Positions 15,681-61,543 are shown, counted from the stretch's first letter. The stretch is DNA of 64,000 bases from Lepidodermella squamata (GCA_047495785.1 JBLDXI010000003.1:1116001-1180000), one strand, 5' to 3'. Notes: a model not told the origin generated them from the sequence alone. Translations and numbers: made by a program.

Positions 15681-16838
15681 TCAAATTTCTTTGCCGTCAA
15701 TAAACCAATATTCTTGACTAAGAGCGAATTTCTCCATTTCAGCAGCATGTTCGGGGTCTTTGTGGAGGCTCTTCGCCAACACGGTGAGTCCACTGCCACG
15801 GAACAACAGTGGGGATAACAGTGACGATTTCTCAACCACAGAATCGAAAAAGCTCTTTGGCGCTCCAGAAATAACAGGGTCAGAATAGAAAAACAACACC
15901 TCAGCTTTGCCGTAAAGGTCATTGACTACTGTAGAGATGAGAGAATCAAAAAGAGCAGCCATATCCGTAACATCAGCTTCAGACAACGATTTAGTCTCGA
16001 ATATGACGGGTAAAACACTTCGGGTTCTCATAGGTTGGCCGTATGGTACTGGCTTTTCGAAAATTCTCGGAAGAACATAGTTTAAAGCTGTGAACAATAT
16101 TTCAGTGGCTTTGTAGATCATCGGTATTGAGACAACTGTCAAAGTCAAGGGGGCGTTGGCTATCACAACATGAAGCGATAATCCATTCTTTGAGACGCCA
16201 TAAATCGTACTATCAAATGAATAATCGTCACTTGGAAACAAAAAGCTGGGGCCAAAACGTGATTTGATGAAATGACTCGCTTCAGGCGGCTCCATTCGAG
16301 TGATTTTGTTACCTTCACGCTCCAGATCCTCGTCACTTTGTACCAATGCCTTGAGGTGGCCGATATTTAAAGCAGGAGATTTCATTGTAGCAATGTGCTT
16401 GAAGCCAAATTTGTTGATCCAAAGCCGTTGAGCAGGCACGTTGTCACCTGTTGTGACCAAATAGGCAAATGTAACCCCTTGGTCTTGCAGTATCGACTCG
16501 ACTTTGTGTTGCAATTGCGTGGCTACTTTTGCGCGACGGTACTCAGGTAGAACACGCATGGTGTGTATGTAGGCCACTTTCTCCAGCTGGTTTTGTCGCC
16601 AGAAAGACACCTCCTTCACACTAGTACTCAGTGCACCAACAACTGTGCCATTTTTCTCGGTGTCTTCTACCAGTAGTACTGTTGTGTTAGGGAATTTTTC
16701 GTGACGTGGAGGGTGAGTAGGGTAGCAGAATTGCACGCCTGTCCCTTGGGCGCAGTCGCGCTCAAGACGGGCAAGTGCTTCCAAATCATTGGCATTTTGC
16801 TCTCTCAGAGGCCGGATGAGAAATCTTCTTGAGGACAT
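15681..16838 (-). CDS. HLS1-like GNAT acyl/acetyltransferase, copy 1 (385 aa, intronless)
   Basis: RLERDCAQG; GNAT motif A TMRVLPEYRRAKVA; DNVPAQRL..KFGF; C-terminus FIDGKEI. Confidence 0.88.
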   Translation of the reverse strand: MSSRRFLIRPLREQNANDLEALARLERDCAQGTGVQFCYPTHPPRHEKFPNTTVLLVEDTEKNGTVVGALSTSVKEVSFWRQNQLEKVAYIHTMRVLPEYRRAKVATQLQHKVESILQDQGVTFAYLVTTGDNVPAQRLWINKFGFKHIATMKSPALNIGHLKALVQSDEDLEREGNKITRMEPPEASHFIKSRFGPSFLFPSDDYSFDSTIYGVSKNGLSLHVVIANAPLTLTVVSIPMIYKATEILFTALNYVLPRIFEKPVPYGQPMRTRSVLPVIFETKSLSEADVTDMAALFDSLISTVVNDLYGKAEVLFFYSDPVISGAPKSFFDSVVEKSSLLSPLLFRGSGLTVLAKSLHKDPEHAAEMEKFALSQEYWFIDGKEI

Positions 16839-17284
16839 GTCATGCGGTTTTTCAATTTGATAATCTGTAGAGTCGAGGGTGGAAAGCTCACTGCTGAATT
16901 CTCTCTTCTTTTTATGTACTATTTTGATAAGCGAACATAAGCAGCTTGCTTTTGCTCAACTCATTAAAATAGCTCAGAATTTAGAGCCCGCTGAATCAAC
17001 ACGGTAGATTTACGCGGTAGATGCTGCTTCGTAAGCATAGAAACGTAGGTCTGATATTGGTTGAAAAGAAGATGTGCAGTTATTGGACAGTTCAATTGAC
17101 AATTGACAATTAAACAGTAGCTAAGAGCTAAGGATTAATGATTAATGATGGTGGCAGTTACGCCTTAAAAATTCCGATCTTGGGTATAAAAGAGCAAGCG
17201 ACTCCAGTGGAATTTCATCCGCAATCAGTTCTAATATTTAAATAAGCTCTTTTCTCTTTTCCAATCGAATCCTCTACCATCAAA

Positions 17285-17770
17285 ATGCGTGCTATCCTCG
17301 CAATCGCAGCTGTTGTTCTCCTCGGACTCGGTAGGTTGCTCAATCAGTTCGAGAAAACTATGTAATCCAATGAATATCACATCGTTTCAGCCTACACCGA
17401 AGCTAAGGTCTGGAATGTCGAGTCGAAGGAGATGCATCGCAACTACCACAAGAGCGTCACTGCTTCGGTGAGCCGATCCTTCGAGAATAAGAAGGCTTTC
17501 AGCAAGGGACGTGCCTTCCCGATGAAGAAGCGCCACGGCAAGAAATTCGGCCGCAAGATGAACAAGCGCCGTGGCTCCTACTCGAAATCGGTCTCTGTTT
17601 CTGTATCGGTCTCCGGTAACAAGCGCAACCACGGTCGCAAGTTCGGCTACGGCAAGAACAAGAAGGCTGGTTTCAAGTTCGGCAACAAGTTCGGCTACAA
17701 CTTTGGAAAGGGCAAGGGCAACAAGAAGGGTTCGTACTCGTACAGCAAGTCGGTCAGTGGCTCATACTAA
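17285..17770 (+). CDS. Secreted cationic K/G/S/F/Y-rich protein, copy B; exons 17285-17330, 17391-17770
   Basis: Protein identical to copy A, offset 5277 bp. Confidence 0.88.
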
Positions 17771-22190: not shown

Positions 22191-23327
22191 TCACACTTCT
22201 TTGCCATCAAGGAACCAAAATGGTTGGCTAAACGCGTGTTTTTCCATTTCAGCTTTCTTGACCGGATCTTTCAGTAAGCTTTTCGCAAGCAAAACCAATC
22301 CGGTACCACGGAAAACCGACGAAGAGATCAACGGTGATTTTTCTATCACATTTTCACAAAAATCAGCATCAACTCCAGAGAGAAGAGGCCCAGAATAAAA
22401 CATTGCCAGATCCGCTTTTTCACACAAATTATTAACAATTGAAGCAGAAAGCGCGTAAAATAAAGTAGAATTATGTGAAATCGATTGATTTCCAATCAGT
22501 ATCGGAAACACTTTCCGAATTCGAATCGATCGATCGAAACGAATCGATTTTTCAAAAAATGTCGGTAAAATTGTGTTGAAACGTCCGAAAATTGTATTTT
22601 TCACTCGATTTATTGCTGGAATCCATGTTACATCCATGATTGTCGCTGAATTCGAAACAACAGCGAATATCGACGCTCCATTTTTCGAAACCTCGAAAAT
22701 TGTGCAGTCGAGCGGAAAATCGTCAGTTGGGAACAGCAATTTTTGTCCAAATTTTGCCTTCAAGAAATCAGCCGCCTGAGACCGTTCCAGACGAGTGATT
22801 TCGAACCCGTCACGCTTGATTTGGCTGTCACTCGGCACCAAATTTTTCGAGTGATCTAGATTAATAGTCGGACAATTGATTTTCGCAGCGATTTTATACC
22901 CGAATTTTCCAATGCACAATTTCTGAGGTGGTAAATTGTCGCTTGAATTTTTCGTATAGGCAAACGTCACGCCTTGATCTCGTAGAAAATCTTCCATTTT
23001 CTGCCATAAATTAACGGCTAAATTAGCCCGCCGATGTTGAGGTAAAACGCGCAACGTGTGCAGTAGGGCGACTTTTTCGGTTTTTTTAGATGGCCAAAAA
23101 TTTGCGGTTCTCAAACTCGCGTTTACGGCTCCGACAATGACGCCGTTATTTTCCGTATCTTCAGCGACTAGGACCACGGAGTTCTGAAATTTTTCGTGGC
23201 GAAGAGGCGGTGATGGGAATCGGTATTTGAATTTCGTGCCTTGAATGCACTCGTATTCAAGCTTGGCCAGCCCAGCCAAATCGAAAGAGCTGGAATTTCT
23301 TAGGAGTCGGATTGAATATCGGTTCAT
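22191..23327 (-). CDS. HLS1-like GNAT, copy 2 (378 aa, intronless)
   Basis: KLEYECIQG, HTLRVLPQHRRANLA, DNLPPQKL, FLDGKEV. The ATG at 23327 aligns with paralogue starts. Confidence 0.88.
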   Translation of the reverse strand: MNRYSIRLLRNSSSFDLAGLAKLEYECIQGTKFKYRFPSPPLRHEKFQNSVVLVAEDTENNGVIVGAVNASLRTANFWPSKKTEKVALLHTLRVLPQHRRANLAVNLWQKMEDFLRDQGVTFAYTKNSSDNLPPQKLCIGKFGYKIAAKINCPTINLDHSKNLVPSDSQIKRDGFEITRLERSQAADFLKAKFGQKLLFPTDDFPLDCTIFEVSKNGASIFAVVSNSATIMDVTWIPAINRVKNTIFGRFNTILPTFFEKSIRFDRSIRIRKVFPILIGNQSISHNSTLFYALSASIVNNLCEKADLAMFYSGPLLSGVDADFCENVIEKSPLISSSVFRGTGLVLLAKSLLKDPVKKAEMEKHAFSQPFWFLDGKEV

Positions 23328-23712: not shown

Positions 23713-23918
23713 CAAAAAAATCAGGAAAAAAGAAAAAATGCAGTGAGCGGCCGCAGTGAATCGAACCACCAAGACTAATTTACTCATTAAATCACCCATG
23801 CCCCCCAATCCATTATGCCACCCACTACTTCACAAAGTATAATGCGATTAACGGGCTGATCTCGTCATTGATTATATATGAGATAAATACCTATAAGGAT
23901 CAAGGTGAGCATGGTTAT

Positions 23919-28160: not shown

Positions 28161-31100
28161 TCAAATCGAATTATTAGTGAACCAAAACGAGTGTTTCGAT
28201 CCGATTTCGAGAAGTTCAGCATTTTTCGCCTCATCACTATACAGCGGCTTCGCGATTCGAATTCCACCGCCAGATCCACGCATCAGTGGTGAAATGAACG
28301 GGCATTTTTGAACCAGGTCGTAATTGGCCTCATCCAAACTCGAGAGCGACTTCTCCATCGGAACGAACAAAACGTCCGTTCCTTGCGATTTCAAGTCGAT
28401 AACAGCCCGAGCCATCGCAGAGTCGAAAATTTGCCGTAATTCTCCCGAATTTTTCTCAGATTTTCGGACAAAAATTGGATAGGCCCAGCGCATTTGCCAC
28501 GGTCGAGTGAATGACACGGGCTTTTCGAAAACCGATGGTAGGATAAAGCCGAGAAACGTCAGAATCCATTGTAGCATTTTGAGATAAAATGGCACAGCCA
28601 CTATTCCCATTTTCTCGCCGTGAGCCCATACATTGATTGCAATCTAAAAATTATTGATAAAAATTATCAACTCATGTTTTTTTGAATTTGTTAATCAAAT
28701 TTAGAAATTTAGAAATAATTTCAAAATTTGAATAAAAATGCTAGTTTAGTTTCAGCGAAAATCTGAGTCGAAAATCGAAGAAAAACACGTTTTCAATCAA
28801 GGTTCTTAAAACTGAGATACGATCATGGGGCAGCATGCGAAAGAGCATATAAAAAGTAGAGTTTACGATGGGTGCTAATTCGAATAATAGCTGGACAAGC
28901 GATAACGAGCAGCAAATGAAACCAATCCAGTTCCTGACAGTGCGGCCTCTGCCGCGCCAAAAAATTCGAACGCGATTGTCAGCCTTTTGCAATCGTTCGA
29001 CAAGAAGGCTGTAATCACTTTCATAAAATAGGACATCGCCGTTCATCACATGAACCACCACACTGAGTCTTGGTCTCCTCTTCAACAGTGCCGGGGAGGC
29101 TGGGAGGCTAAACATCTTCTCGCTTCGTTCAGCCGCGCTAAGAAGCGCCGCTCACCGTTTTTTAGCATTCAAAAATATCATTTTCGATAAGAAATCCAGC
29201 CCGGCGGATTTGGCCCCGCCGATTTTCATGAATTCGCCAACATGCTTCGCAGACTATAAGTGGGTGTTACACGCATTGCTACTTGTTCCTATCTATCAGT
29301 TTTCTATTTTAAAAGTTATACAGCGGAATTTTCGAATGAGCAGCGATTTGACGCGGCATTTCAAAAGAGTATCTCTAATGCGGCGCACCAAACTAAGCAT
29401 TTTTGCCGTTTTCTGAAACAGCACGTCGTTCTGCCTGGCTATGACGAATTCGGACTTGAAAGTTATTATGGCCAACTCTTTCGCTTCATCACAGGTCCCA
29501 ACGGCGATGCTCTGACGTCAGACAGCAAAAAGAGTTCTCACTAACGAGCGCTTCCTATCGGTTCCTACCACCATCGAAGGCGGCGAAGCGTTCATCCCGG
29601 CGACAAGGTGCGCGATTTCGAATATGAAAATTACGAAGTGAAAGCCTTTGTTGATTCTTCTTATTCGGAATATGGCTACAAGAGCCATTTCATCAAGGTA
29701 TTGCTTGATGCTATATTCAAGTGTAATTTCATTGAATCTCGATACTTCATTTAGTTTACACCGATATAGCGAAGGACAGATTAGATGGCGACTTAATAGC
29801 GAAAATTAAGGTGGACCACAATTAAGGTGCCGCTCAGTGAAGTTCCACGCGTCTTTCATCAAATCGATGCCGACTGAGGCTGTTGTGGCTAAACACACGC
29901 GCGCAGCCGAGCTTTATCATTACTTCGAGCGCAACTAAAAATCGAGCGAATTAAATTGAGAAGGGTTCGCCGAGAGCGTAACGTGTGATTGTACTACGTC
30001 TGAATTCAAATTTCTCAAAATTATTGCTGTTTATTTCTCAACTTATGCTCCTAAAAATACTATGTCTCTTTTTTGCAATTATCTCCACAAAATGATCGAT
30101 AAGAAAATTTATTCTACGAGTACCTACTTGTTGGGGATTTTAATCTCCCTGGTTTCGACTGGAAAAATTTCACCATCGTAGGAATCGTTAGAAACTAATC
30201 CCTGAAGATGGTTATCGAGTATAACCGAAACGTTGGAATAAATGCGTTACGTTTCATAAACAACAGTTACTCAAAGAACTTGTAATACGGCAAATCGTAA
30301 GAATTTAAAATATAAGGGCTTTGCTGACTTCATGCTGACAAACAACTTGAAGCAATTGGTTAGCTCAATTCCGGGCCCATATTAGTTCCGTCCAGTCGGA
30401 GGGTAAAAGTGGACTTAGCGCAAAACGCGCAAAACGCGCAAAAGTCGAAATTTTTAGAAATTTCAAGGCCGCGTGCGGTAAAGTCAAAGGGTAAGTTTTG
30501 ATTATTTAGGCGGTTTTTATACCAAAAGAAAGTTCAGAAAATTCTCTATAGAATAGATATGGATTTCTCGCGTGAAAAATGAACGAAAATACGGTTACCG
30601 CACATCCTAACTTTTGAGACGCGAGTGCGCGCGCTCTCAACTCGCGCGCAACATTTAGGTGCACGTAAAACTTTTTTATTTTAATTTTTTCGAGCGAGAA
30701 CCCCATATTCAATCGATAGAGAATTGTCTGAATTATGTTTTGGTATAAAAACCGACGCGATATTTGAAAGTAACCCTTTAGCATCTTTGCGCGCGGTTTT
30801 ATATTTGTTAAAAATCAGGACTTGGCTTTTGCGCATAAGTTGAATTATTTTTAACAAATATAAAACCGCGCGCAAAGATGCTAAAGGGTTACTTTCAAAT
30901 ATCGCGTCGGTTTTTATACCAAAACATAATTCAGACAATTCTCTATCGATTGAATATGGGGTTCTCGCTCGAAAAAATTAAAATAAAAAAGTTTTACGTG
31001 CACTCTAAATTCCGCGCTTTGACCAGGAACGTGCATACGCGTAAATGAAAAGTTGGAGTGCTCGTAAAACCTGTTAATTCAAATTTTTCTCGCCAGAAAC

Positions 31101-34100
31101 CCATATTCATTTGATAGAGAATTATTTAAGCTTCATTTTGGAATAAAGACCGCTAGGATATTCGAAAATAGCCCTTTGACATCAGCGCGCGCGGCCAAAA
31201 TGTTGTTTAAAATTTCGACTTGGCGTTTTGCGCTAAGTCCACTTTTACCCTCCAATTGCGCAACCGACGCTTGGGGGCCGGACGGAACTAATATGGGCCC
31301 GGAATTGAGCAATTGGTTACAGGTATCAAGAGACCTAAAACTAAAAATCTCTTGGATCTTATTACTACGCGATGTTCTGATTTAGTCTCAGAAATCAAAA
31401 TAGAGGAACCATCAGCGTGGTCATTGCGTTCTCGCTTTCAAGATTAATCAAGCTTTCTCGTTTGACAACCCTATCAATTCTGTCAAATCAAAATTCAGCT
31501 TCTAAAAAGGTGATTACGCTAGTTTCTCTGCATTTCTTTCTTCCTTCGAATGAGAACAACTATTTTGCTGTTTGTCGACGGTGGATCGGTGGATCCTTCC
31601 TCATCTCGGTTCTTTATTCCGGTATAAAATCCTTTATTCCAATAAAAAACTCCTATCAAATCACCTCGCCGAGTGCCATAGGAAACTGTGGAGCTGCGAC
31701 GGCTCTGGTACGGGGCTCACAATTACCCGCATGCGCCAAAACGTCTTTGAAGCACGCATACTAACTGGGGCTTTCGCTGGGAACTTGGCGAAAATTCCGT
31801 GAATACCACTAATCTCCGACCAGGAAGGAGTGCCAATCTCTATTCGCCGTCGCCAGTTTCCGGTACGGTTGGCTTTCTGTTGCTCGATCAATAAAAGTCA
31901 GGGTTAAACTTTTCAGTTCGTTAGTGTCTCTCTACATCGCAGTGAGGTCTTCTCCCACAGTCAACTATACGTTGCCCTATCCCGCGTCACCGACCCCCAA
32001 ATCGTCAACTGCTATCAACTCAGTTGCTGATGCTGATCAATTCCAGCTGAGTTCTTAATTCTATAATTCAACTAAGATTAGGGCTGAGAAATTCGAGCCG
32101 TCAACTCTGCTTAGACAAAAATAGGTCATAATATTCCGGTCGACTTATGGCGAGTCTTCGAGAACAATTCGAAAAATGAGTCAGATCGTAAAGAATTGAC
32201 CAGAGCGGATATATTATTCAGTGAAAAAGTAGGAAGGTGCACGTCGTCAACAAATTTCTCCGAATAAATGGATGAAGTTAAATCTCAGTTCTCATCTCTC
32301 AAGATTCGAGGCGTAGATAAAAGAAATAAAAAAAGATGATACAATCATCACGGAAGAACTCGAAAAGGACAGCCTATCTTTTGATGAGCCTGTATAGGGC
32401 AGGAGAGCAAGTTGGTGCACATGGTCAGGGATATATTGGCGCTGTGTTCAAGCGGTGGGCAAAACGCCCTGATGGCGAGCCTGCTGAGCTCTGGTGCAAC
32501 GAATGCGAGATCGATACTCATTCGACAGAAGTCCGCTGCTTTGCCAAACGCCGCCGGTTGGATCGTCCGCCAAGCCGGGGTCGGGGCTATCGGTTCTACT
32601 AGTCCACTCTCCACCGCAAAATAAGTATACCAAGGTTGGAGTTAGCCATCGGAACGTGTGGCGTTTCTCAAACTCCATGTTCGAGTTGAAAAACGACTCG
32701 CGAGTGATCCTCGACTAAATTGCGGTCAACACCTTCAAGCCAGCTAACTCTGGGTCAAAGCTTTACGCTCGCATCACCGAACGGATTAACAAGTTTTGGG
32801 ACGAACTGGATCACAACGAGCTGACCTCCATCAAATTTCTTGATTCAGTGTTCCACTGTCTCTCCGAGCTGAAGGAGAAGAAACATCGGCAAAAGGAGGA
32901 CTTCGGCGAGCTTGCTCCGCAAATTGCTGATTTAGCTGAGAATCTCTACCTCAACACTTCGCGCAATTCCCAACTCGATGAATCAATCCTAATTGACGAG
33001 GAAGTTCTTACATCTCAGCAAGCTCGTTTTGTGCGTTACATTTGCGAACATTTGCCACTGACCTACCATGTTATCGATCATCACCCAGAAGAACGAGAGC
33101 ATGGGCGGCTGGTGGGACCTCGATTTGGTATAGTGCCCCTACGCTCAACTCACTTTCTTGAAACTTTGAAGAAGAGATGATGTCAGCAGTTGTTGTCATT
33201 TTTCGCTCTGTATGGGTTGTCTATAATTATTTGTATATTTTAAAATTGCAAAATTATTTTCAGAATATATTTTAGCGTAACGAAATTTTTCTGTTACGGA
33301 ACCTAATTTTAGATAAGAAAAAGGTCGATTTTCGAATATTTCCACGAAATTAAGGCAATTTATGAATTCTATTGTGAAGAGTGCGTCTTATACAGCATTT
33401 CACGCTGAATTTAAAGGTAAGCTATTTTAATTTGAGCCGATCAATCATGACATCTTTTTAAGCTTCGAAAATAGGGTTAAGGCACATCGAAAATTCCAAA
33501 ATTTGGTTCCGCTTACAGCCAATTTTGGTTCCGCTAAAAGTAAGACCCAATTATTTCATTTGTGATTCTAAAAATGAATCGGCTACTCAAGTGGTGATTC
33601 CATTTTTAGAATACATATTCAATTATTCAAAAAATCGTATAAGACGTTCCAATATATATGGTTCCAAACATTTCAAAAACTTGAAATTTTTAGGAACCAT
33701 GGGACCATCAAACAATATTTCATCGCCCAAACTTTTTCCGAGTGACGTACCTGATTTTCGCCTTGGGTAGCCAGAAATACGTTCGATTCGTAGATGTCTT
33801 CATTGTTTTGCGGGAACAGAAATGACTCGCCATAATTCTTGCGCAAGAAATCGCGCGATTGCACTGAATCTAGTTTCTCAACTTTCAAAGACTCTCGGGC
33901 CAATTTCCCAACCCGGTAATCGGCAGTGTGGCCAACATTGATGCCATAGAAATGACACTGATCGAAAAATTGATAGCCGTGCTTTTCGAAGAGGCGGAAA
34001 CTCGGCGTGTTATCCAAGGCGAGAGAGTCGAAAATGAATTTCACGCCGTGTTCGTCACGCAACCGCCGTTCCATGTCGCTGATCAGCCGACTGGCGTAAC

Positions 34101-44491: not shown

Positions 44492-45628
44492 TCAAACTTC
44501 TTTGCAGTCGAAAAATATGAAATCTTGCTTCATGAAAAGCGACAATAAATCGGAAGCATTTGCTCCAAGAGCTTTGACTAGCATGAAAAGACCCATTCCA
44601 CGGAAAAGGGTAGTTGAAATGTAACTAGACTGCTCAATCACCTTACTAGACTCCGAATCAAGCCCTGACAACGCCGGCTCGCCATAAATCATCAACACCT
44701 CAGCCTTGTCTACTAAATCGTTGACTATCGACGCTACCAAAAAATCGAAATACTCCTTTTTCAACGTTGATTTTCGCCCGTTTGAATCTTCGACTAGAAA
44801 CGGGAGTACATTGCGAAGTCGCCAGGTGCTGCCGTAAGACAACGGTCTCTCGAACCAGCGCGGGAAGAACCAATTCAAAACCGCTGAAATCCAGTCTTTC
44901 AGTCGAAATCGCCACGGAACCCCTAGAACAATCATATTTGTCGCTATATCCACAACACAAGCCGATGCCGTGATTCCATCTTTAATCACCGAATAAACTG
45001 TACATCTCACCGGAAAATCCAGAGATGGAAGTAGAAATGATCCGAAAAACTTTTGCCTCACAAAATTTTCCGCTTGATCGGCTTCGATTTTGCGAAAATT
45101 GAAACCGAATTTTTCCGCAATTTGCACATTTTCCAGCACCAAATTTTTAACATGCTTGATATTAACAGCATGGCACCGGGCCGAACTCGCGTGTTTATAG
45201 CCTAATTTGTTCATAAAAAGCCGCTGTGATGGAAAATTGTCGATCGAAGCTGCGCCGTAGCAGAATTCAACTCGCCGTTCTTTTAGTAAAAAATCCTCCA
45301 ATTTTAGCACTAAAATCGTTGCTAAATTCGCTCGTCGAACTGAGGGTAGGACTCGTAGCGTATGAATCAGAGCCACATTGCCATACCTGCCATTGCCTAA
45401 GTGGGCTGTTTTGACGCTACCGGCCACACATGCGACAATTTCGCCGTTTTCACGATTTTCCGCTAACAGTATGGTATTGTCGATGTATTTTTTGAAACGA
45501 GGTGGGTTAGGGGCGAGGCAAAATCGAATACCGGTGCCTTGGACGCACTTCAGTTCTAAACTGGCCATACTCTCCATATCGGCGCTGTTAAAACGCATTG
45601 GGCGAATAGCAAATCGATCATCGCCCAT
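44492..45628 (-). CDS. HLS1-like GNAT, copy 6 (378 aa), recent duplicate of copy 5
   Basis: Near-identical to copy 5; flanks are also homologous. Confidence 0.9.
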   Translation of the reverse strand: MGDDRFAIRPMRFNSADMESMASLELKCVQGTGIRFCLAPNPPRFKKYIDNTILLAENRENGEIVACVAGSVKTAHLGNGRYGNVALIHTLRVLPSVRRANLATILVLKLEDFLLKERRVEFCYGAASIDNFPSQRLFMNKLGYKHASSARCHAVNIKHVKNLVLENVQIAEKFGFNFRKIEADQAENFVRQKFFGSFLLPSLDFPVRCTVYSVIKDGITASACVVDIATNMIVLGVPWRFRLKDWISAVLNWFFPRWFERPLSYGSTWRLRNVLPFLVEDSNGRKSTLKKEYFDFLVASIVNDLVDKAEVLMIYGEPALSGLDSESSKVIEQSSYISTTLFRGMGLFMLVKALGANASDLLSLFMKQDFIFFDCKEV

Positions 45629-46034: not shown

Positions 46035-47180
46035 TCAGATTTCCTTCCCGTCCAGAAACCAAAAATGCTGATTTTTAGCAAAATTCTCCATTGCTTCGCG
46101 CTCCTTTTCATCGCTTGACAAGCTTTTCGCCATAACATAAAGCCCAATACCTTGGTACAAAGTCGGCGAAATCGATCGGTCCTGCGGTATCAGATCCGTA
46201 AATTCTTTCCTCAACCCAGTCATAGCTGGGTGAGCGTAAAATAGCAATATTTCAGCTTTTCCATTCAAATCTCTCACGATATTCGCCACCAAGCGTTTAA
46301 ACATCTCTTTCATGATCAATGGATGGCACCATTCCGCGAGAAGTGGAAAAACATTGCGGACTCGAAACGGCTTTTTATAGCATAGCGGCTTCTCGAAAAT
46401 ATCCGGCCAGAAAATGTTTAAAAAATCGAATAATATATTTTTCAGCCAATTCCGCCACGGAACTGCGATAACATTCCAAACAGTCGCCTGATCAGCTACA
46501 ACCGCCGATAATTTCGTGCGACTTCCAGCCACTGCCACGGAATAAACCGTCGACTGAATAGGAAATTCGCGAGATGACAACAAAAATGAACCGGCGAATT
46601 TTTCTTGAATAAAATTTTCCGATTCCGGGTATAGAATTTTTTCACTTTCAAACTCGGAATTCAAAGGGGGGAGCAATTTTGCCATATGGCCGATATTGAC
46701 TGCGGCTAACGGGGCAGTAAACATGTGTTTGTATTTCAGTCGACTTTGAAACGTTTTCTGCGATGGAATGTTTTCGGTTGACGTGCAAGAGTAGCAAAAC
46801 ATCACGCCTTTATCCCGTACAGCATTTTCAAGTTTCTCGACTAAACTCGATCCTAAATTAGCTCGACGGCATCGCGGTAAGACTCGTAGGGTGTTTACAA
46901 ACGCAACTTTGCCATATTCCGCAACTTTCCTGTAATCAGCCGGCGGTTTGATGATAGCCGTTCGAATAACGGCGCATACCGAGCCAACTATAAGCTGTGT
47001 TGCTTTTTCCTCGGCGAGTAAAACCAGGGTGTCGACGTATTTTGTGAATCGAGGCGGGTCGTGGTGGAAGCAAAAGCGAAGACTCACGCCCTGGGCACAT
47101 TCGCGTTCGAGATAGGCCAAAGATTCCAAATCCGCTGAATTCATCCTCAACGGGCGAATTTCGTACAGTTCTTCGGACAT
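46035..47180 (-). CDS. HLS1-like GNAT, copy 7 (381 aa)
   Basis: LERECAQG, NTLRVLPRCRRANLG, FLDGKEI. Confidence 0.9.
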   Translation of the reverse strand: MSEELYEIRPLRMNSADLESLAYLERECAQGVSLRFCFHHDPPRFTKYVDTLVLLAEEKATQLIVGSVCAVIRTAIIKPPADYRKVAEYGKVAFVNTLRVLPRCRRANLGSSLVEKLENAVRDKGVMFCYSCTSTENIPSQKTFQSRLKYKHMFTAPLAAVNIGHMAKLLPPLNSEFESEKILYPESENFIQEKFAGSFLLSSREFPIQSTVYSVAVAGSRTKLSAVVADQATVWNVIAVPWRNWLKNILFDFLNIFWPDIFEKPLCYKKPFRVRNVFPLLAEWCHPLIMKEMFKRLVANIVRDLNGKAEILLFYAHPAMTGLRKEFTDLIPQDRSISPTLYQGIGLYVMAKSLSSDEKEREAMENFAKNQHFWFLDGKEI

Positions 47181-47626: not shown

Positions 47627-48757
47627 TCACAGTTCTTTGCCATCGATGAACCAAAACTTCTGACTAGCAACAAATCGCTCCATCTCATCGGCTTCAGCTC
47701 GGCTTTCCTTCAAGCTTTTGTACATCATAAACAGGCCAATCGTTCGAAACAGCGTCGGAGAAATGAACTTCGACCGGCTTAAAATTTCGCCAACTTCAGG
47801 ACCGAAGCCTGATATCATCTGATGGGTGTACACCATCAACACATCAGCCTTTCCATCCAAATCGCGGCTAATCAAAGCTAGAACCGCTTCGAAATAGTCC
47901 AAGGCTTGTTTTGGGTCCAAATTTTCTGCCAAAAACGGCATGACAATTCGCATTTTAAACGGTTTGTTGTAAGAAATTGGTCGCTCGAAAAATTTCGGGA
48001 AAAACCAATTTAACACCGAAAATAACCATCCCTTCACGCGTAATTTCCATGGAACAGCTAAAACAGTCCAAGTAGTCGGGACATTAGCAACTACGGCACT
48101 TAACCGAGCGCCATTTTTCGCAACCCGAAAAATCGTGGAATTCACCGGAAAATCTTGGGTTGGAAATGAAAATCGATCGCTCCAATTTTGGATCAGAAAT
48201 TTTTCCGATTCAGGATATTCGATTTTCGCAACTTGAAATCCGATGCTGTCGGGATTCGGCGAAATTCTAGCGATATGGCCGATATTTATCCCATTACACT
48301 GCGCCGTAAAAGAGTGTTTAAAATTCAATTTTTCGATAAATAATCTCTGCGAAGGGACATTATCCGACGACGCGGCTGCGTACAGAAAAGTCACGCCATT
48401 TTTACGCAGCTCAATTTCCAAATTTTGCAGCAATTTGAATGATAAATTCGCGCGGCGATGTTGCGGCAAAATGCGAACCGTATGAATTAAGGCGACTTTT
48501 TCGAAGCGCTGGTCCGATTTGCTGTTGAATAGCGCGTATTTCATGCTGCCGCAGACTACGCCAACCATCTGGCGAGTTTCGACCTCTTCGGCGACCAGGG
48601 CTACGGTGTCGTAGTATTTTTCATAGCGAGGCGGGTGACTAGGGTAGGCGAATTTGAGGCCGGTTCCTTGTACACAGTCGCGTTCTAACCGGCCCAGGGA
48701 TTCTAGATCGAAAGCATTTTTGAGGAAAGGCCGGATGCGATATGCAGATTTTTCCAT
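47627..48757 (-). CDS. HLS1-like GNAT, copy 8 (376 aa)
   Basis: RLERDCVQG, HTVRILPQHRRANLS, FIDGKEL. Confidence 0.9.
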   Translation of the reverse strand: MEKSAYRIRPFLKNAFDLESLGRLERDCVQGTGLKFAYPSHPPRYEKYYDTVALVAEEVETRQMVGVVCGSMKYALFNSKSDQRFEKVALIHTVRILPQHRRANLSFKLLQNLEIELRKNGVTFLYAAASSDNVPSQRLFIEKLNFKHSFTAQCNGINIGHIARISPNPDSIGFQVAKIEYPESEKFLIQNWSDRFSFPTQDFPVNSTIFRVAKNGARLSAVVANVPTTWTVLAVPWKLRVKGWLFSVLNWFFPKFFERPISYNKPFKMRIVMPFLAENLDPKQALDYFEAVLALISRDLDGKADVLMVYTHQMISGFGPEVGEILSRSKFISPTLFRTIGLFMMYKSLKESRAEADEMERFVASQKFWFIDGKEL

Positions 48758-51166: not shown

Positions 51167-52273
51167 TCAAATTTCTTTCCCATCCATAAACCAAAACTTC
51201 TGGCTGGCAACAAATTTATCCATCTCATCATTCTCGTCGCGGCTTGCCCTCATGTTCTTAAACATCATGAAAACATCGTAACTGCCAGCCAAAGACGGCG
51301 AAATGAACCGTGATTTTCGTAAAATTCGGCAAAATTCCTCGTTCAGACCAGAAATTTCAGGATCAAAATAACCAATTAGCACATCAGCCTGCTGATCCAA
51401 ATCGTGGCTCATGAAAGCCAACAGAGCGTGAAAATACTCCAGAATTCGACCGGAATCGACATTTCCACCCAAAAATGGCAGCACCAGATGCGTTTTCATA
51501 CGTTTCCCATACGAAATCGGACGCTCGAAATAGCGAGGTAGAAACCAGTTCAAAATTGAATGAATAAAAACTTTCAAATGCACCAACCACGGAACTTTCG
51601 AAACTGTCCAAACCGTCGGGACATTCGCTACTACAGCGCTTAATTTAGCCTCTTTATCTGACACTGAATAAATCGTACAATTAACAGGAAACTTTTCAGC
51701 TGGAATCAAAAATTTATCGCCAAAATGTTTTCGCAAGAAAATTTCCGACTGTGGCGAATCAATTTTTGAAACGCAAATTTTTCCATTATTTTTAGGCAAA
51801 ATTTGGTTTAAATGGCCAACATTAAACGCGACGCAATTAGTCGTGAAAGCGTGTTTAAAATTCTGTCTATTTATAAATAATCGCTGCGATGGAAAATTAT
51901 CTGGGGCAGTCGCCGCGTATAAAAATTGGACTCCATTTTGCCGCAATTCAATCTCCAATTTTTCTAACAATTTCGATGCTAAATTAGCGCGGCGATGTTG
52001 CGGCAAAACTCGGACCGTATGGATGAGGGCGACTTTTTCGAAGGTTTTTACCAACGCGTATTTCATACTGCCGCAAACAGCGCCGACAACGTGGCCAGTT
52101 TCGACCTCTTCAGCTAGTATTATGATGGTTTCGGAGTATTTTTCGAATCGCGGTGGGTGGCTAGGGTAGCTGAATTGCAGGCCTGTTCCTTGGGCGCAAT
52201 CGCGTTCCAAACGGCCTAGGGCTTCTAGATCTGCCGCATTTTTGCGGAATGGCCGAATTCGATGGGCGTCCAT
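51167..52273 (-). CDS. HLS1-like GNAT, copy 9 (368 aa)
   Basis: RLERDCAQG, HTVRVLPQHRRANLA, FMDGKEI. Confidence 0.9.
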   Translation of the reverse strand: MDAHRIRPFRKNAADLEALGRLERDCAQGTGLQFSYPSHPPRFEKYSETIIILAEEVETGHVVGAVCGSMKYALVKTFEKVALIHTVRVLPQHRRANLASKLLEKLEIELRQNGVQFLYAATAPDNFPSQRLFINRQNFKHAFTTNCVAFNVGHLNQILPKNNGKICVSKIDSPQSEIFLRKHFGDKFLIPAEKFPVNCTIYSVSDKEAKLSAVVANVPTVWTVSKVPWLVHLKVFIHSILNWFLPRYFERPISYGKRMKTHLVLPFLGGNVDSGRILEYFHALLAFMSHDLDQQADVLIGYFDPEISGLNEEFCRILRKSRFISPSLAGSYDVFMMFKNMRASRDENDEMDKFVASQKFWFMDGKEI

Positions 52274-54535: not shown

Positions 54536-55642
54536 TCAAATTTCTTTCCCATCCATGAACCAAAAAGTCTGGCTGGCGACAAATTTATCCATTTCATCGT
54601 TCTCGACCCGGCTCTCCCTCAGGTTCTTAAACATCATGTAAACATCGTAGCTCCCAGCCAAGGACGGCGAAATGAAACGTGACTGTCGCAAAATCCGGCA
54701 ACATTCCTCGTTTAGACCAGAAATTTCAGGATCAAAATAACTAATTAGCACATCAGCCTGTTGATCCAAATCGTGGCTCATGAAGGCCAACAGCGCGTGA
54801 AAATACTCAAGAATTCGACCGGAATCAACATTTTCAGCCAAAAATGGTGTAACCAGACGCGCTTCCATTGGTTTGCCATACGAAATCGGACGCTCGAAAT
54901 AGCGAGGTAGAAACCAGTTCAAAATTGAATGAATAATAGCTTTCAAATGAACCCACCACGGAACTTTCAGAACGGTCCAAACTGTCGGGACATTCGCTAC
55001 CACAGCGCTTAATTTAGCTTCTTTACCAGACACCGAGTAAATCGTACAATTAACTGGATAATTTTCAGCTGGAATCAAAAATTTATCGCCAACATTTTGT
55101 CTCAGGAAAATTTCTGACTCTGGTGATTCAATTTTCGAAACGCGAATTTTCGCATCAATCTTCGGTAAAATTTGGTTCAAATGGCCAATATTAAACGCGA
55201 CGCAATAAGTCGTGAAAACGTGTTTGAAATTCTGTCTATTGATGAATAATCGTTGCGATGGAAAATTATCTGGGCCAGTGTTTGCGTATAAGAAGGCGAC
55301 TCCATTTTGCCGCAGTTCGATCTCCAATTTTTCCATCAATTTCGACGCTAAATTAGCGCGGCGATGTTGCGGCAAAACTCGGACGGTGTGGATGAGGGCA
55401 ATTTTTTCGAAGGTTTTCACCAACGCGTATTTCATACTGCCGCAAACAGCGCCAACAACGTGACCAGTTTCGACCTCTTCGGCTAGTATAATGATGGTTT
55501 CGAAGTACTTTTCGAATCGCGGTGGGTGGCTAGGGTAGCTGAATTGCAGGCCGATTCCTTGGGCGCAATCGCGTTCCAAACGGCCTAGGGCTTCTAGATC
55601 TGCCGCATTTTTGCGGAATGGCCGAATTCGATAAGCCTCCAT
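54536..55642 (-). CDS. HLS1-like GNAT, copy 10 (368 aa), recent duplicate of copy 9
   Basis: Highly similar to copy 9; flanks are homologous. Confidence 0.9.
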   Translation of the reverse strand: MEAYRIRPFRKNAADLEALGRLERDCAQGIGLQFSYPSHPPRFEKYFETIIILAEEVETGHVVGAVCGSMKYALVKTFEKIALIHTVRVLPQHRRANLASKLMEKLEIELRQNGVAFLYANTGPDNFPSQRLFINRQNFKHVFTTYCVAFNIGHLNQILPKIDAKIRVSKIESPESEIFLRQNVGDKFLIPAENYPVNCTIYSVSGKEAKLSAVVANVPTVWTVLKVPWWVHLKAIIHSILNWFLPRYFERPISYGKPMEARLVTPFLAENVDSGRILEYFHALLAFMSHDLDQQADVLISYFDPEISGLNEECCRILRQSRFISPSLAGSYDVYMMFKNLRESRVENDEMDKFVASQTFWFMDGKEI

Positions 55643-56762: not shown

Positions 56763-57887
56763 TCAAATTTCCTTGCCATCAAAATACCAAAACGGCACAT
56801 CGACCGCGTGATTTTCCATCCGCGCCGCTTCTTGTCGGTCCTGGGCCAAGCTTTTCACCATTTGAAAATGTCCAGTGATGCGGAACAAGGTTTTTGAAAT
56901 CAAGCTAGAATTCCGAACAATATCCGCGAAATCTGACCCGAGTCCTGTGATTTTAGGCTCGCCATGAATCATCAATATATCTACTTTTCCTCTCAAATGT
57001 CGAACCATGACTTGAATTAATTCCCCGAAAAATTCTTCTAAAACGGACTTGGAATCGATTTTTTCAGCTAAAAACGGGCAAACATGGCGAAACCGCCAGT
57101 CTGAATTGTAGGGCAGTGGTTTTTCGAAATAGCGGGGAAATAGCCAGTTTAAAACGCGCAACGCCTGAGATTTCAGCCAAATCCGCCACGGAACAGCCAG
57201 TACAATCCAAACAGTAGGGACATTAGCTACAACAGCCGTCAATTTCGAACCGTTTCTAGCCACCGAATATATGGTACATTTCACCGGAAATTCCTCGGTT
57301 GGGAATAGAAATGAATCGCCCCAGTGTTTTCGAATGAATTCTTCCGAGATCGGAGCTTCAATTATTTCGCAGAAATAATTTTTCGACGATTTTTCAGGAA
57401 TTATTTGGCTTACATGGGCGACATTTACAGCGTTATAGGGCGATGTAAAAACGTGTTTATAGCCGAATTTACCCATGAAAAACCGCTTTGACGGGGCATT
57501 ATCTGAAGCTGTACCAGCATAAGCGATTGAAACACCGCGTTCCACCAACAACATTTCCAATTTTTCCAACATTTTCGACGCCAAATTAGCCCGGCGGTAT
57601 TGCGGTAGAACTCGGAGTGTGTGAATCAACGCGAATTTTTCGAATCGCTGCGGTGGTTGGAATAGCGCGGTCTTTACACTGCCGACAATGACGCCTAGAA
57701 TTTGACCGGTTTGGCGATTTTCGGCGAATAAAACGATGTTGTCGACGTATTTCTGGAAACGAGGCAGATTACTGGCGTAACACAGCCGCAGTTCACTGCC
57801 CTGGGCACAGTCACGCTCGAGTTGCGCGAAAGCTTGGAAATCGGCCGCGTTATTTCGAAACAATCGAATTACAATATCGGATTCCAT
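56763..57887 (-). CDS. HLS1-like GNAT, copy 11 (374 aa)
   Basis: QLERDCAQG, HTLRVLPQYRRANLA, YFDGKEI. Confidence 0.9.
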   Translation of the reverse strand: MESDIVIRLFRNNAADFQAFAQLERDCAQGSELRLCYASNLPRFQKYVDNIVLFAENRQTGQILGVIVGSVKTALFQPPQRFEKFALIHTLRVLPQYRRANLASKMLEKLEMLLVERGVSIAYAGTASDNAPSKRFFMGKFGYKHVFTSPYNAVNVAHVSQIIPEKSSKNYFCEIIEAPISEEFIRKHWGDSFLFPTEEFPVKCTIYSVARNGSKLTAVVANVPTVWIVLAVPWRIWLKSQALRVLNWLFPRYFEKPLPYNSDWRFRHVCPFLAEKIDSKSVLEEFFGELIQVMVRHLRGKVDILMIHGEPKITGLGSDFADIVRNSSLISKTLFRITGHFQMVKSLAQDRQEAARMENHAVDVPFWYFDGKEI

Positions 57888-58015
57888 TATGCCTCAACAA
57901 ATTCGGTAAAAAATCTATTGAAGCAATCAATTTACCAGAAAAATAATCATGATAATTGAATGAAATGAATTGAAACAAAAAATTGAGATTGAATGAAAAC
58001 GATATGAATTGCAGA

Positions 58016-59158
58016 TCATAGTTCCTTAGAGTCAATGAACCAGAACGGTTGATTTTTCGCGAAATCAACCATCGCCTCAGCCTCTTTACGGTCAGGCTTC
58101 AAGCTTTTCGCCAACATCAACATTGGGCCTTTTCTGAACAAATTTCTCGAAATGAACCTCGAATTTTCGATGATGCCAATTTCTTGCTTTGTCAAATTCG
58201 ATACAGCCGAGCCAACATGAATTTGCAAGGCATCAACCGCATCATCGACTTCACTCAGATCTCGCAAAATTTCGGCAATCAGCGAATCAAATAGCCGCAA
58301 AAATGTTGAGCTTGAAATTTCGCCTGATTTTAAAAACGGTAATACCATACGAAATCGCCACGGTTTGTCGTACGATAACGGCTTCTCGAATAAACGGGGG
58401 AAGATCCAGCTTAAAACCGATTGGAAAAACTGCGAAATTCGATATTTCAACGGAACTTGAAAATAAATCCACTCATTAGAAATTTTCGAAACAGTCGCCA
58501 TCAATTCGCAATTCTCACCACGTAATTTTGCGCTGTAGACAAAGGCCTGAACTGGGTTCAGCTTTTCATTCGGGTAGAGGAAAGTTTTTCCGAAAAACCT
58601 TTTCAAAACTATTTCCGACTCGGTTAGACTGAATTTTTTGGTAGTTACCTCCGAATCGATTTTAAATGTGAAATATCGAGAGATGTGGCGAATATTTACG
58701 CCGTAAGTTGGCGCTGTCCACATCGGGCGATAGCCGAATTTATCGATCAAAAGCCGCTGCGAAGGGACATTTTCAACGCCAGTTCCAGCGTAAATGAAGC
58801 AAACGCCTTTTTCCAGTAATTTTCTCTCGATTTCTAACAACAAATGTGAAGCGAGACCGAATCGGCGATGCGTGAAATCAACGCGTAAATTGAACACCCA
58901 CGAGACTTTTTCGAATTTCGAACCGAACAAAACCGATCGAATATTAGCCGCGATACCTCCAACGATTTTTCCGGTTGATTTTTCCTCGCAAAGTAGGACG
59001 ATAGATTCGGCGAATTTCGAATGACGAGGCGGGTCTGAGCCGAAACACATTTTCAGGCCAACGCCCTGGGCGCAATCTCGTTCCAGTCGAATAATTGCGG
59101 CTAAATCTTCTGAATTTTCAGGCCGGTAAGATCGAATTAAAAATTGGTCGAGAGACAT
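58016..59158 (-). CDS. HLS1-like GNAT, copy 12 (380 aa)
   Basis: RLERDCAQG, WVFNLRVDFTHRRFGLA, FIDSKEL. Confidence 0.9.
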   Translation of the reverse strand: MSLDQFLIRSYRPENSEDLAAIIRLERDCAQGVGLKMCFGSDPPRHSKFAESIVLLCEEKSTGKIVGGIAANIRSVLFGSKFEKVSWVFNLRVDFTHRRFGLASHLLLEIERKLLEKGVCFIYAGTGVENVPSQRLLIDKFGYRPMWTAPTYGVNIRHISRYFTFKIDSEVTTKKFSLTESEIVLKRFFGKTFLYPNEKLNPVQAFVYSAKLRGENCELMATVSKISNEWIYFQVPLKYRISQFFQSVLSWIFPRLFEKPLSYDKPWRFRMVLPFLKSGEISSSTFLRLFDSLIAEILRDLSEVDDAVDALQIHVGSAVSNLTKQEIGIIENSRFISRNLFRKGPMLMLAKSLKPDRKEAEAMVDFAKNQPFWFIDSKEL

Positions 59159-59326
59159 TATTTTTCGAGAAAAAATAGCCTAGAAATTTCAAGGTCACAA
59201 TTGATACCAACAAATGTGAGTTTATCTCAGTTTCGCATAATTAATGAGATAATTAATAGTAACGATATTACAACGTAAAATTAATATATACATTTATACA
59301 TGTGAGCAATTTTTTTCGATTTTTTT

Positions 59327-59587
59327 TCAATGAGAACCGGCACTTGCAGTGTAGGCAGATTCGCTCAGGTGCTTGACGACCAGTAAAATGGTCGAATTAT
59401 TTTGAACGTTGTATTCGGCAAGCGAGTGGCCGTCAATGAGGTCGCGGTTGTTCACGAGCAATCTCTGCTTGTCCATCGGCACTTTGACGCGGGCGAAAAT
59501 TTGATTTTTCAGCATTTCGACCTTATCAGTCGGTTGCAGGTCGAAACTCCACGATGTGCCAATCAGAGTTTTTACTAAAATCGGCAT
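59327..59587 (-). CDS. Stand-alone ubiquitin-like protein (86 aa) lacking the C-terminal diglycine
   Basis: MPILVKTLIG...LKNQI...VPMDKQRLL...LIDGHSLAEYNVQNNSTILLV follows the ubiquitin pattern. Tail is KHLSESAYTASAGSH. Confidence 0.8.
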   Translation of the reverse strand: MPILVKTLIGTSWSFDLQPTDKVEMLKNQIFARVKVPMDKQRLLVNNRDLIDGHSLAEYNVQNNSTILLVVKHLSESAYTASAGSH

Positions 59588-60388
59588 TTTTAACAATGCA
59601 ACAACAAATCAAACCTAAACAGAAAAAAATGAAAATAAAACAAAATAAAATTCCCAAAAGACCCGGGGATGCAATTGGTGATCTGAAAAGACTGGATTCA
59701 CTACCAAAGCCAAGTGTGGAGTCGAAGTGATCAGTATTTTTTATTTTTCACAACCAAATTTCGATAATATGGAACCTTCGCCGTTACGAAAATGGGTCCT
59801 TCTTACCGGCCATCAGGCTGATGATCAAGCAAGGAGCGATATTTTCCAAATTCATCGCAAGCTCTTCTCCGAGGAATCCAGTTGGTTCGAACCTTAATTT
59901 GAGATTGATTTCGATATTTACAATACCTAATTCCTTTCTGTCGGTTTGTCGACAATGATTAAGCCTTGAGTCCCAAAGGCAAACTCTTGAACTTTGGAAA
60001 TTCAGACCAAATAACCGTCCTTAAATCTAAAATGATAGCAAGTTGTCTTTGCTCGTAGTCGGCAATATAAAACAGGAGGGACTAAAAGCAAACCCATCCA
60101 GAGAATTTTTCTAATTCATTGAAAAACTCAGACCCGATTTCATCGATTCAGAAAGAAAATTCGACGGGAAGAATTTTTGATACACGGCCTTCGATTTTCA
60201 GAGAAACATCAGCATCTCGTGCCCAATAAATTGTCACCTAGCTCTAAAAATAAAAAATCAAGAATCGATAAATATAGACAAAATCAATAGTTCGCATAAT
60301 TTTATTCAGTAATCCAGAGGCTATAAAATTGATAGTTCTCGCAATTAAACAACAATCAAACAAAAAATCACAGCTTTTATTCGATAAA

Positions 60389-61543
60389 TTAGATTTCATT
60401 GCCATCGATAAACCAAAATTTTTGACTAGCAGCATATTCTACCATTTTTCGCGACTCGTCCTTATCATCTGCCAAAGCCTTGGCGTAAACAAACATTCCA
60501 GTTCCGTTGAAAATCGCCGACGGATTCAGCGCCTTTTTCACATCCTGCAACAACTGCGGATCGCCTTGACAATCGACCCCAATTATTTGCTGAGCAAGGG
60601 ACGTGCATAGTAGAGAAATGTCAGTATGCACATTTTTCACGACACAGGCCATCACTTCTTTCGTTAGCGCCACGTAATTTTCCCGGTTTTTTACTCGGAA
60701 TAGCATTGGAAAAATGAAATAGCTATGCCATGGCTTTCCTAAGGGCAGGACTGGTTCGAAATATCCGGGAAAGAAATAACTTAAAATTCGCCAGAAAAAT
60801 ACGACAATTCGTAGTTTGAATGGCAGCTCAACAACTGAAAATGCTTCTTTCGTCTCAGGAACTGTGAAAGCCAATTCATCGCCATCTTTGTTATTTTTCG
60901 CAATATAAACTCGACTTTTCATAGGGCTGATGTCAAGATCGGGGAAAAAGAACGAATTTTTGTAATTTTCGTACAAAAATTTGGACGATTCCTCGAGGCT
61001 CAATTTCAACGTGGTGATGTTTGGATTCGGTTTTTTCGGAAGATTTCGATAGTAAAAACCGACGTTGATGTTCAACCATTCACCTCCAAACATTGAAGCA
61101 TAGCCATTTCTCGAAAATAGACCCAAACTAGGCGTGTTGTCGTTTCCTATTCCGCAATACAAGAATGAAACGCCTCTTTTTCTCAGCTCGGATTCGAGAC
61201 ATCGAATTAAATAGCTAGCTAAACCAGTCCTTCGATGATCATGAGCAACTCGGAGTGAATAAATCCACGCAGCTTTGATTTTCGGCTGCGGCGCCGGGTA
61301 GAATTGAACAGTTCGAATGTGAGCCATGAAACACCCGACCAGTTCGCCGGTTGCCTTCGCCTCAGCCATCAAAATTACCGAATTTTCAGGGCGGAATTTT
61401 GAGGCTCTGGGTGTATCGCCGGCGAAAATCATCTTAATCGCCGTCCCTTGAGCGCAATCAAGTTCCAACCTCGAAACAGCCGCGTGGTCTTCATCATTCA
61501 GCCGATGAGGCCTAATCAAGTACAATTCCTCAGCCCGAGACAT
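60389..61543 (-). CDS. HLS1-like GNAT, copy 13 (384 aa)
   Basis: RLELDCAQG, WIYSLRVAHDHRRTGLA, DNTPSLGLFSRNGY, FIDGNEI. Confidence 0.9.
   Translation of the reverse strand: MSRAEELYLIRPHRLNDEDHAAVSRLELDCAQGTAIKMIFAGDTPRASKFRPENSVILMAEAKATGELVGCFMAHIRTVQFYPAPQPKIKAAWIYSLRVAHDHRRTGLASYLIRCLESELRKRGVSFLYCGIGNDNTPSLGLFSRNGYASMFGGEWLNINVGFYYRNLPKKPNPNITTLKLSLEESSKFLYENYKNSFFFPDLDISPMKSRVYIAKNNKDGDELAFTVPETKEAFSVVELPFKLRIVVFFWRILSYFFPGYFEPVLPLGKPWHSYFIFPMLFRVKNRENYVALTKEVMACVVKNVHTDISLLCTSLAQQIIGVDCQGDPQLLQDVKKALNPSAIFNGTGMFVYAKALADDKDESRKMVEYAASQKFWFIDGNEI

Follow-up and report, generated by a model that had tools for sequence, protein, structure and literature searches.

A tandem array of 13 HOOKLESS1-type GNAT genes in the animal Lepidodermella squamata

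The closest described counterparts of the 13 tandem genes considered here, which lie in a 64,000-nucleotide stretch of the Lepidodermella squamata genome (GCA_047495785.1 JBLDXI010000003.1:1116001-1180000; hereafter the window), are the N-myristoyltransferases (NMTs) and the plant HOOKLESS1 (HLS1) family. NMT is a single-chain tandem GNAT protein in which acyl-CoA is held by the N-terminal lobe (N-lobe) and the acceptor by the C-terminal lobe (C-lobe), and its catalytic base is its own C-terminal carboxylate. The plant family, with the plant regulator HLS1, HLS1-like (HLH) and rice GW6a (OsglHAT1), consists of proteins of ~370–420 amino acids (aa) with a GNAT N-lobe and a degenerate second lobe. 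HLS1 is said to originate in the embryophytes, and its C-terminal domain to be specific to land plants (PMC10133230, PMC11923405). In the Arabidopsis protein, the C-terminal residues L327 and E346 are functionally critical (PMC10133230), and the C-terminus folds within a predicted pocket; a C-terminal tag kills the function, whereas an N-terminal tag does not (PMC11923405).

The genes of the window share this length and architecture. They probably form a lineage-specific array for cytosolic two-lobed acyl-CoA N-acyltransferases with different acceptors, as judged by analogy with related enzymes of solved structure. This kind of protein is known; an old, expressed array of 13 such genes in an animal appears to be unreported, and so does the family signature, whose elements reach from the motifs of the N-terminus to the tail at the C-terminus and which is common to several domains of life. 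A literature search on HLS1 in animals, or on a link between HLS1 and NMT, returned nothing relevant.

Fold, motifs and the C-terminal tail

The structure of one copy (g47627) was modeled with AlphaFold2 on an alignment of 11 paralogues. The model has a predicted local distance difference test score (pLDDT) of 83.6 and a predicted template-modelling score (pTM) of 0.82, and consists of two alpha/beta lobes. Its top three Foldseek matches among the Swiss-Prot models are Arabidopsis HLS1 (Q42381), HLS1-like (O64815) and rice GW6a (Q67UR2), which cover residues 6–360 with E-values of 1e-19 to 1e-20 and template-modelling (TM) scores of 0.72–0.74, followed by the N-myristoyltransferases at a TM of ~0.5. 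In the ESM Atlas, the best match is a 379-aa streptophyte cluster (TM 0.81/0.81, root-mean-square deviation 3.2 over 355 residues), and further matches come from a haptophyte cluster (0.76) and from Bathyarchaeota and bacterial clusters (0.70–0.75). Among the solved structures, tandem-GNAT enzymes rank ahead of single-domain GNATs. NMT is the best solved analogue (Z 19.4, TM ~0.5); it differs from the window proteins in sequence (10–12% identity), its specific N-terminal extension and motifs are missing from them, and neither the NMT (PF01233) nor the NMT_C (PF02799) model is among the matches of the Pfam scan at E <= 0.1. The other tandem-GNAT matches are the fungal and clostridial glucosamine N-acetyltransferases (5kf1, 4zm6), histidine acetyltransferase (9emd), MAB_4324 (7q3a) and Eis (3sxn). 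Such enzymes have the same two-lobed fold (Z 16–19 over 280–290 residues, identity 7–14%), while the sequence relationship is limited to the generic GNAT N-lobe.

Standard annotation describes only the first part of these proteins. The Pfam scan (E <= 0.1) places PF00583 in all ten copies tested, with E-values from 2e-7 to 4e-13, over the N-terminal ~45–150 residues, and finds no domains beyond GNAT in the window copies. NCBIfam gives sub-threshold generic GNAT matches and no full-length model, and a sequence search of the solved structures gives generic single-domain GNAT matches only. The proteins look cytosolic and without a signal peptide. In the hmmsearch with the family profile, the best named matches are land-plant proteins (E 1e-16 to 1e-21), several of which are annotated as 'probable N-acetyltransferase HLS1' (Pistacia, Linum), with further plant matches in Genlisea, Zostera, Oryza and Taxus. 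The hhalign comparison of the animal and plant HLS1 profiles reaches an E-value of 1.2e-32 over 299 columns (query 2–311, plant 5–349) and aligns (L)ERxCxxG, LRV.P..RR.G.(A/G), DN.(P/A)S..LF and the FP motif. These elements are collinear in both groups, the first two in the common forms (L)ERxC(E/Q)xG and LRV.P..RR.G(L/I)(A/G), and the FP motif lies past the GNAT domain.

The first-pass annotation of the window had proposed a likeness to HLS1, and this likeness extends beyond GNAT motif A: it includes the whole-length fold match, the alignment over ~300 columns and a parallel C-terminal tail. The motifs listed there, namely IRP, LE(R)xCxQG, LRV..RRx(G/N)xA, DNxPS..LF, F(L)FP and the terminal FxDGKE(I/L/V), are all found in the alignment of 11 copies (A1). 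R101 and R102 are invariant in the 11 aligned copies, and R95 and N133 in 19 sequences from two species. The differences from the plant family are nevertheless considerable. The identity to the window proteins is 25–33% and concerns the N-lobe only, the animal proteins lack the large insert that separates beta-strands in the plant C-lobe, the plant tail DPRD[F/V] is replaced by DGKE[I/L/V] or NNSI, and the arrangement of 13 genes in tandem within an animal genome is unlike that of plant HLS1.

The tail was compared by printing the C-termini of the plant, protist, prokaryote and animal groups side by side. Members of all four groups share the pattern aromatic-x-D-x-x-[D/E]-hydrophobic at the exact C-terminus, and in every case the chain ends one residue past the acidic position. 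The plant proteins end in FVDPRD[F/V], the protist proteins in F[F/H]DPRD[I/L], the prokaryote proteins in [Y/W/F][V/I][D/N]x[V/I][D/E][L/I], and 11 of the 13 window copies in F-x-D-[G/C/S]-[K/N]-E-[I/L/V]. The first-pass annotation had given the plant ending as FVDPREF; the parallel with the terminal FxDGKE[I/L/V] holds, while the letters themselves are those given above. The same architecture and tail pattern are present in the uncharacterised two-lobed GNATs of prokaryotes and protists (~340–450 aa; e.g., MCW4050294.1 of a Bathyarchaeota metagenome-assembled genome and Thecamonas trahens AMSG_09136, with further examples among the transcripts of Entosiphon, Ancoracysta and Rhynchopus). These proteins belong to other clades, and the animal profile matches them in hhalign with E-values of 2e-29 (prokaryotes) and 6e-29 (protists). 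The gene neighbourhoods of three prokaryotic homologues and two unplaced remote matches show no common context from which a substrate could be guessed.

Gene models, selection and transcription

The six-frame listing of open reading frames (ORFs) contains eleven single-ORF paralogues on the minus strand (15681 to 61546), which measure 368–385 aa when counted from the first ATG. The tblastn search of these eleven ORFs against the window locates five more minus-strand fragments, at 28164-28643, 33625-34260, 36400-36636, 37242-38210 and 40222-40548. P0005, the nearest outside relative (57% identical), guided a direct reading of the splice junctions, and the five fragments resolve into two intact genes, A and B, through canonical GT..AG phase-0 introns. 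The intron of gene A spans 2086 nt (GTGAGT...TCTTAG), and those of gene B span 2241 nt (GTAAAA...TCTTAG) and 5107 nt (GTACGT...TTTTAG). The reading of the fragments at 28–40 kb as decaying pseudogenes is thereby ruled out. The description of the locus as 13 co-oriented paralogues of 368–390 aa thus agrees in count, orientation and length with the ORF listing and tblastn, with the amendment that two of the copies are intact only once spliced. The strong divergence that had been noted among the copies is borne out by a pairwise identity of 26–90%, with a median of 37%. All genes are listed in Table 1.

Table 1. Array genes and flanking genes in the window (L001 is the metagenome contig described in the next section)
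Feature	Position	Strand	Length (aa)	Observations
Calpain protease exon	601..1800	+		PF00648 E 1e-47; animal-type flank
g15681	15681..16838	-	385	PF00583 E 7.5e-13
g22191	22191..23327	-	378 (from first ATG)	GNAT paralogue
Gene B	28161..36645	-	378	Exons 36645-36463, 34221-33751, 28643-28161; tail FWFTNNSI
Gene A	37239..40497	-	390	Exons 40497-40297, 38210-37239; tail FWFLNNSI
g42371	42371..43510	-	379	GNAT paralogue
g44492	44492..45628	-	378	Recent duplicate of g42371, 90% aa identity, dN/dS 0.25
g46035	46035..47180	-	381	GNAT paralogue
g47627	47627..48757	-	376	Copy used for the structure model
g51167	51167..52273	-	368	Partner of g54536
g54536	54536..55642	-	368	Recent duplicate of g51167, 88% aa identity, dN/dS 0.18
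g56763	56763..57887	-	374	128 nt downstream of g58016
g58016	58016..59158	-	380	Subfamily common to L001:5876/10001; cDNA coverage
g60389	60389..61543	-	384	PF00583 E 4e-13; array member nearest NT5C2; subfamily includes L001:2970/4320/7281
NT5C2 last exon (cytosolic purine 5'-nucleotidase)	62683..63303	-		PF05761 E 1e-18; animal-type, synteny anchor

The array genes are under purifying selection. In addition to the values for the two recent pairs (Table 1), the ratio of nonsynonymous to synonymous substitution rates (dN/dS) is 0.15–0.17 for the older measurable pairs. The youngest duplicates belong to repeats whose units measure 2.12 and 3.37 kb and reach past the ORFs. Such an extension of the repeat beyond the coding sequence is a signature of unequal crossing-over.

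The transcription of the array was assessed in the region 54500-60400 of the window (5.9 kb), with contigs from an RNA run of 2015 and from a DNA run. The RNA-run contigs cover the ORFs of g54536, g56763 and g58016 and the 3′ end of g60389, and their depth is zero over the intergenic segments 55682-56666 and 59622-60212. The library of this run is cDNA, since one loose contig end is the reverse complement of the SMART adaptor. The array is therefore at least partly transcribed, on the evidence of four copies. The DNA-run contigs cover all of 54500-60400, and one contig of 3421 nt joins g56763 and g58016. At position 58270, inside g58016, the DNA-run contig is one base short in an A4T3 run, which would cause a frameshift ~85 codons before the end; the missing base is either a null allele of another individual or an assembly error.

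Acceptor-like motifs (TTTTCAG or TTTTTAG) are observed ~10–20 nt upstream of the ATGs at 61543, 55642, 52273 and 23327. Together with the 128-nt spacer at 57888-58015, they fit introns in the 5′ untranslated regions or spliced-leader trans-splicing with polycistrons. No spliced-leader sequence was found in the contigs matched to 54500-60400.

Age of the array, distribution of the family and genomic setting

The word-indexed protein search with a single copy as the query gave no match, and with a 19-sequence profile it gave three metagenomic relatives only. Such an index is too coarse for this GNAT family, and therefore an exhaustive hmmsearch of the family profile against 1.84 billion representatives was used. 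It returned nine representatives as close relatives (E < 1e-30), all from ENA metagenome assemblies. Full-length orthologues spread broadly over the Metazoa, which would have spoken against the first-pass annotation, were not found among the representatives searched.

The most informative of the relatives is the metagenome contig L001 (29.4 kb). It carries NT5C2, then nine tandem paralogues, and then the genes of Spo11, SOSSC, a UAA transporter and TMEM18. The NT5C2 of L001 is 66% identical in aa sequence to that of the window and 50–58% identical to the NT5C2 of many bilaterian phyla; the source of L001 is therefore a diverged animal relative. In the careful maximum-likelihood tree, the proteins of the window and of the metagenomes unite in a single clade with a support of 100/99, in which at least four subfamilies are common to the window species and L001 and are collinear. 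The member adjacent to NT5C2 is orthologous in both species (win_60389 with L001_2970/4320/7281), win_58016 clusters with L001_5876/10001, and genes A and B cluster with the last L001 gene. The other copies of the window and of L001 are lineage-specific expansions. Such shared and collinear subfamilies mean that an array of several genes stood at this position in the common ancestor, and the array next to NT5C2, with at least four subfamilies, predates the split of the two species. The L001 orthologue of gene A (14405-15592, 57% identity) is intronless and consists of a single ORF; therefore, the introns of genes A and B were either gained in the window lineage or lost in the other.

The metagenomic relative also carries dispersed single members of the family, at L003:10001-11032 and L004:233-1300. 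Their neighbours are ordinary eukaryotic genes (Sec1, Brix, THOC5 and BCAS3; rRNA adenine dimethylase and xanthine permease). The genome of this relative is very compact and intron-poor.

The wider relationships were examined with a quick tree of 116 rows and a careful tree of 60 rows, computed with the posterior mean site frequency (PMSF) model. The animal clade receives a support of 100/100, and its stem measures ~1.05 substitutions per site. It takes part in a four-way polytomy with the plants plus two unnamed sequences, Ancoracysta plus the prokaryotes, and Entosiphon together with one unnamed sequence; another group of protists, with Thecamonas, is placed further off. The embryophyte HLS1 clade is exclusive (100/100), and the window genes fall outside it. 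They constitute a deep clade of their own rather than orthologues of HLS1, and the trees give no support to a recent plant or bacterial donor. Of the 150 remote matches listed, ~30 could be labelled, and 7 of these ~30 are without a name. The named ones are from plants, protists or an archaeon, and include Thecamonas (an apusomonad), Entosiphon (a euglenid), Ancoracysta, a Rhynchopus-like diplonemid and a Bathyarchaeota metagenome-assembled genome. The ESM Atlas adds the haptophyte and many bacterial clusters to this range. The HLS1-type family is thus spread over bacteria, archaea and several eukaryote groups. The same architecture and tail in an animal, an archaeon, probable bacteria and protists make plant HLS1 one branch of a multi-domain family.

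Two routes can account for the presence of the family in this animal lineage, an ancient horizontal acquisition and a vertical retention with massive loss elsewhere. Both are possible, and the balance tips only slightly towards acquisition, because of the apparent absence of the family from other animals in a collection of 15 billion proteins.

The array lies between animal-type genes, as the first-pass annotation had stated: by Pfam, a calpain and NT5C2 flank it on either side. The GC content at third codon positions (GC3) is 0.41–0.49 in the eleven intronless copies, 0.64 in gene A and 0.53 in gene B. In the flanks it is 0.61 for calpain and 0.70 for NT5C2; calpain, NT5C2 and a ubiquitin-like gene within the array together span 0.59–0.70. 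The lower GC3 of the intronless copies would fit weaker expression or a younger age and is diagnostic of neither.

Several other elements are interspersed with the array. The ubiquitin-like gene is an 86-aa ubiquitin-family ORF (59327-59587, minus strand; PF00240 E 8.5e-17) between g60389 and g58016, with a cDNA contig depth of ~29, above that of the GNAT genes. A full-length gene of the U2 spliceosomal small nuclear RNA (snRNA) lies at 17965-18166 on the minus strand (Rfam RF00004, 118.8 bits), between g15681 and g22191. The same interval contains two ORFs without a Pfam match, one of 432 aa (19302-20600, minus strand) and one of 285 aa (18458-19315, plus strand), the latter of low complexity and rich in Asp, Glu and Thr. 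A GC-rich satellite of 4.1 kb (23913-28044), located between g22191 and the 3′ end of gene B, is built from a unit of ~190 nt with a higher-order period of 368 nt, in ~22 copies with 87–89% matches, and it accounts for the GC peak at 24–28 kb. Just outside the array, a reverse-transcriptase fragment (PF00078; 13896-14333, minus strand) and an ankyrin-repeat ORF (14550-14936, minus strand) are present, which fits transposable-element debris at the array border.

Proposed function, competing explanations and significance

The proposed battery of acyl-CoA N-acyltransferases is suggested by the solved tandem-GNAT relatives, which use small amines or peptide N-termini, and by the many diverged copies, which suit substrate-diversified enzymes. 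In such enzymes, the N-lobe would hold acyl-CoA with its motif A (R-R-x-[G/N]-x-A) and with the helix that carries DNxPS..LF, and the degenerate C-terminal GNAT lobe would form the acceptor pocket. The tail, of invariant length and with a free carboxylate, would fold back into this pocket and may act in catalysis as in N-myristoyltransferase. It may therefore be a functional, possibly catalytic, element across the whole family; this proposal draws on the HLS1 C-terminus, which sits in a predicted pocket and is tag-sensitive, and on the carboxylate base of NMT. The duplicated copies would then have diverged, the C-lobe somewhat more than the N-lobe, into enzymes with different amine acceptors, either small molecules or peptide N-termini. 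The array itself, already present in the common ancestor, then grew by local unequal-crossover duplications of 2.1–3.4-kb units, and two copies may have gained introns. A narrower version, in which an HLS1-type enzyme, acquired or uniquely retained by this animal lineage before at least two of its species split, gave rise to a battery of 13 members for chemical defence, detoxification or signalling and the tail serves as an NMT-like carboxylate base, is conceivable but rather doubtful.

Several observations weigh against this interpretation. Even for HLS1, the substrate is a matter of dispute, and no activity was seen in vitro (PMC11923405). The proposed role of the tail is an analogy; the model has low confidence in its final ~10 residues (pLDDT ~51), and the tails of genes A and B and of their L001 orthologue depart from the shared ending with NNS[I/L], as FWF(L/T)NNSI in the two window genes. 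The C-lobe taken alone gives a collinear but weak hhalign match to the plants (E 2.9e-4, probability 40%) and no significant match to the prokaryote and protist profiles. Near the low-confidence end of the longer hhalign alignment with the plants, a plant-consensus Glu (P0014 ~348), a candidate counterpart of E346, pairs with a variable Y/H/S column. The mean column conservation is 0.58 in the N-lobe and 0.51 in the C-lobe, and such a modest gap makes the diversified pocket suggestive only. Further animal members of the family are also possible, since the labels cover ~30 of the 150 remote matches listed.

The main competing function is that of protein-lysine acetyltransferases, which would modify histones or regulatory proteins and act as transcriptional or signalling regulators, in line with the histone acetyltransferase model put forward for HLS1 and GW6a in plants. 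HLS1 and GW6a are the nearest characterised relatives in fold and sequence, hls1 mutants show reduced H3 acetylation and ATG18a is a reported HLS1 substrate (PMC11923405), and the N-lobe is also similar to protein N-alpha-acetyltransferases. Yet the histone acetyltransferase activity of HLS1 was undetected in vitro, and HLS1 kept outside the nucleus by an ER tether rescues the mutant fully (PMC11923405). The closest solved tandem GNATs besides NMT act on small amines (glucosamine, histidine), the window proteins are without extra domains, and an array of 13 copies at 26–90% identity is more usual among substrate-diversified metabolic or detoxification enzymes than among chromatin regulators. 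Regulators of this type are therefore considered unlikely. The loss of catalysis, with the fold kept for binding or scaffolding, is more improbable still. Such pseudoenzymes could be suspected from the replacement of the motif A glycine in most copies (RRANLA instead of RRxGxG/A), from the LF at the usual position of the motif B tyrosine, which plant HLS1 has likewise, and from the lack of demonstrated in vitro activity of HLS1. These signs are opposed by the RR pair, N133 and the tail, which are invariant or nearly so over the 13 copies, by the invariance of R95 and N133 in both species, and by the purifying selection on recent duplicates; in addition, HLS1 point mutants in conserved acetyltransferase residues do not complement (PMC10133230).

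If a plant or bacterium had recently donated the array, or if its sequence were a contaminant or chimera of the assembly, the array would be foreign to the animal. Eleven copies are intronless, their GC3 is below that of calpain and NT5C2, and plants provide the best named sequence matches. The plant identity, however, is just 25–33% and limited to the N-lobe, and the clade has a long stem and is nested neither in the land plants nor in the sampled prokaryotes. Two copies have canonical spliceosomal introns, the U2 snRNA gene and the expressed ubiquitin-like gene lie within the array, and DNA contigs bridge adjacent genes. In a second, diverged species, a collinear array lies next to the same animal NT5C2, so that the array is old rather than a contamination. 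Contamination and recent plant-to-animal transfer are rejected on the clade position, the introns and the collinear array, and the foreign origin as a whole is extremely improbable. The chimeric or contaminant contig named in the first-pass annotation as a possible refutation thus finds no support in the contigs, introns, U2 snRNA gene and L001 array, all of which speak for an animal locus.

For animal genomics, the locus represents a large, conserved and expressed enzyme array that standard domain annotation shows merely as 'GNAT', and it offers a clean case in which patchy retention can be tested against the old acquisition of a gene. Work on HLS1 goes back to the 1990s and has led to no consensus on its substrate, and a comparative biochemistry of soluble animal or prokaryotic members could help to find the reaction of the family. 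If true, the catalytic role of the tail carboxylate would be the first mechanistic handle on the biochemistry of plant HOOKLESS1, a question of ~30 years.

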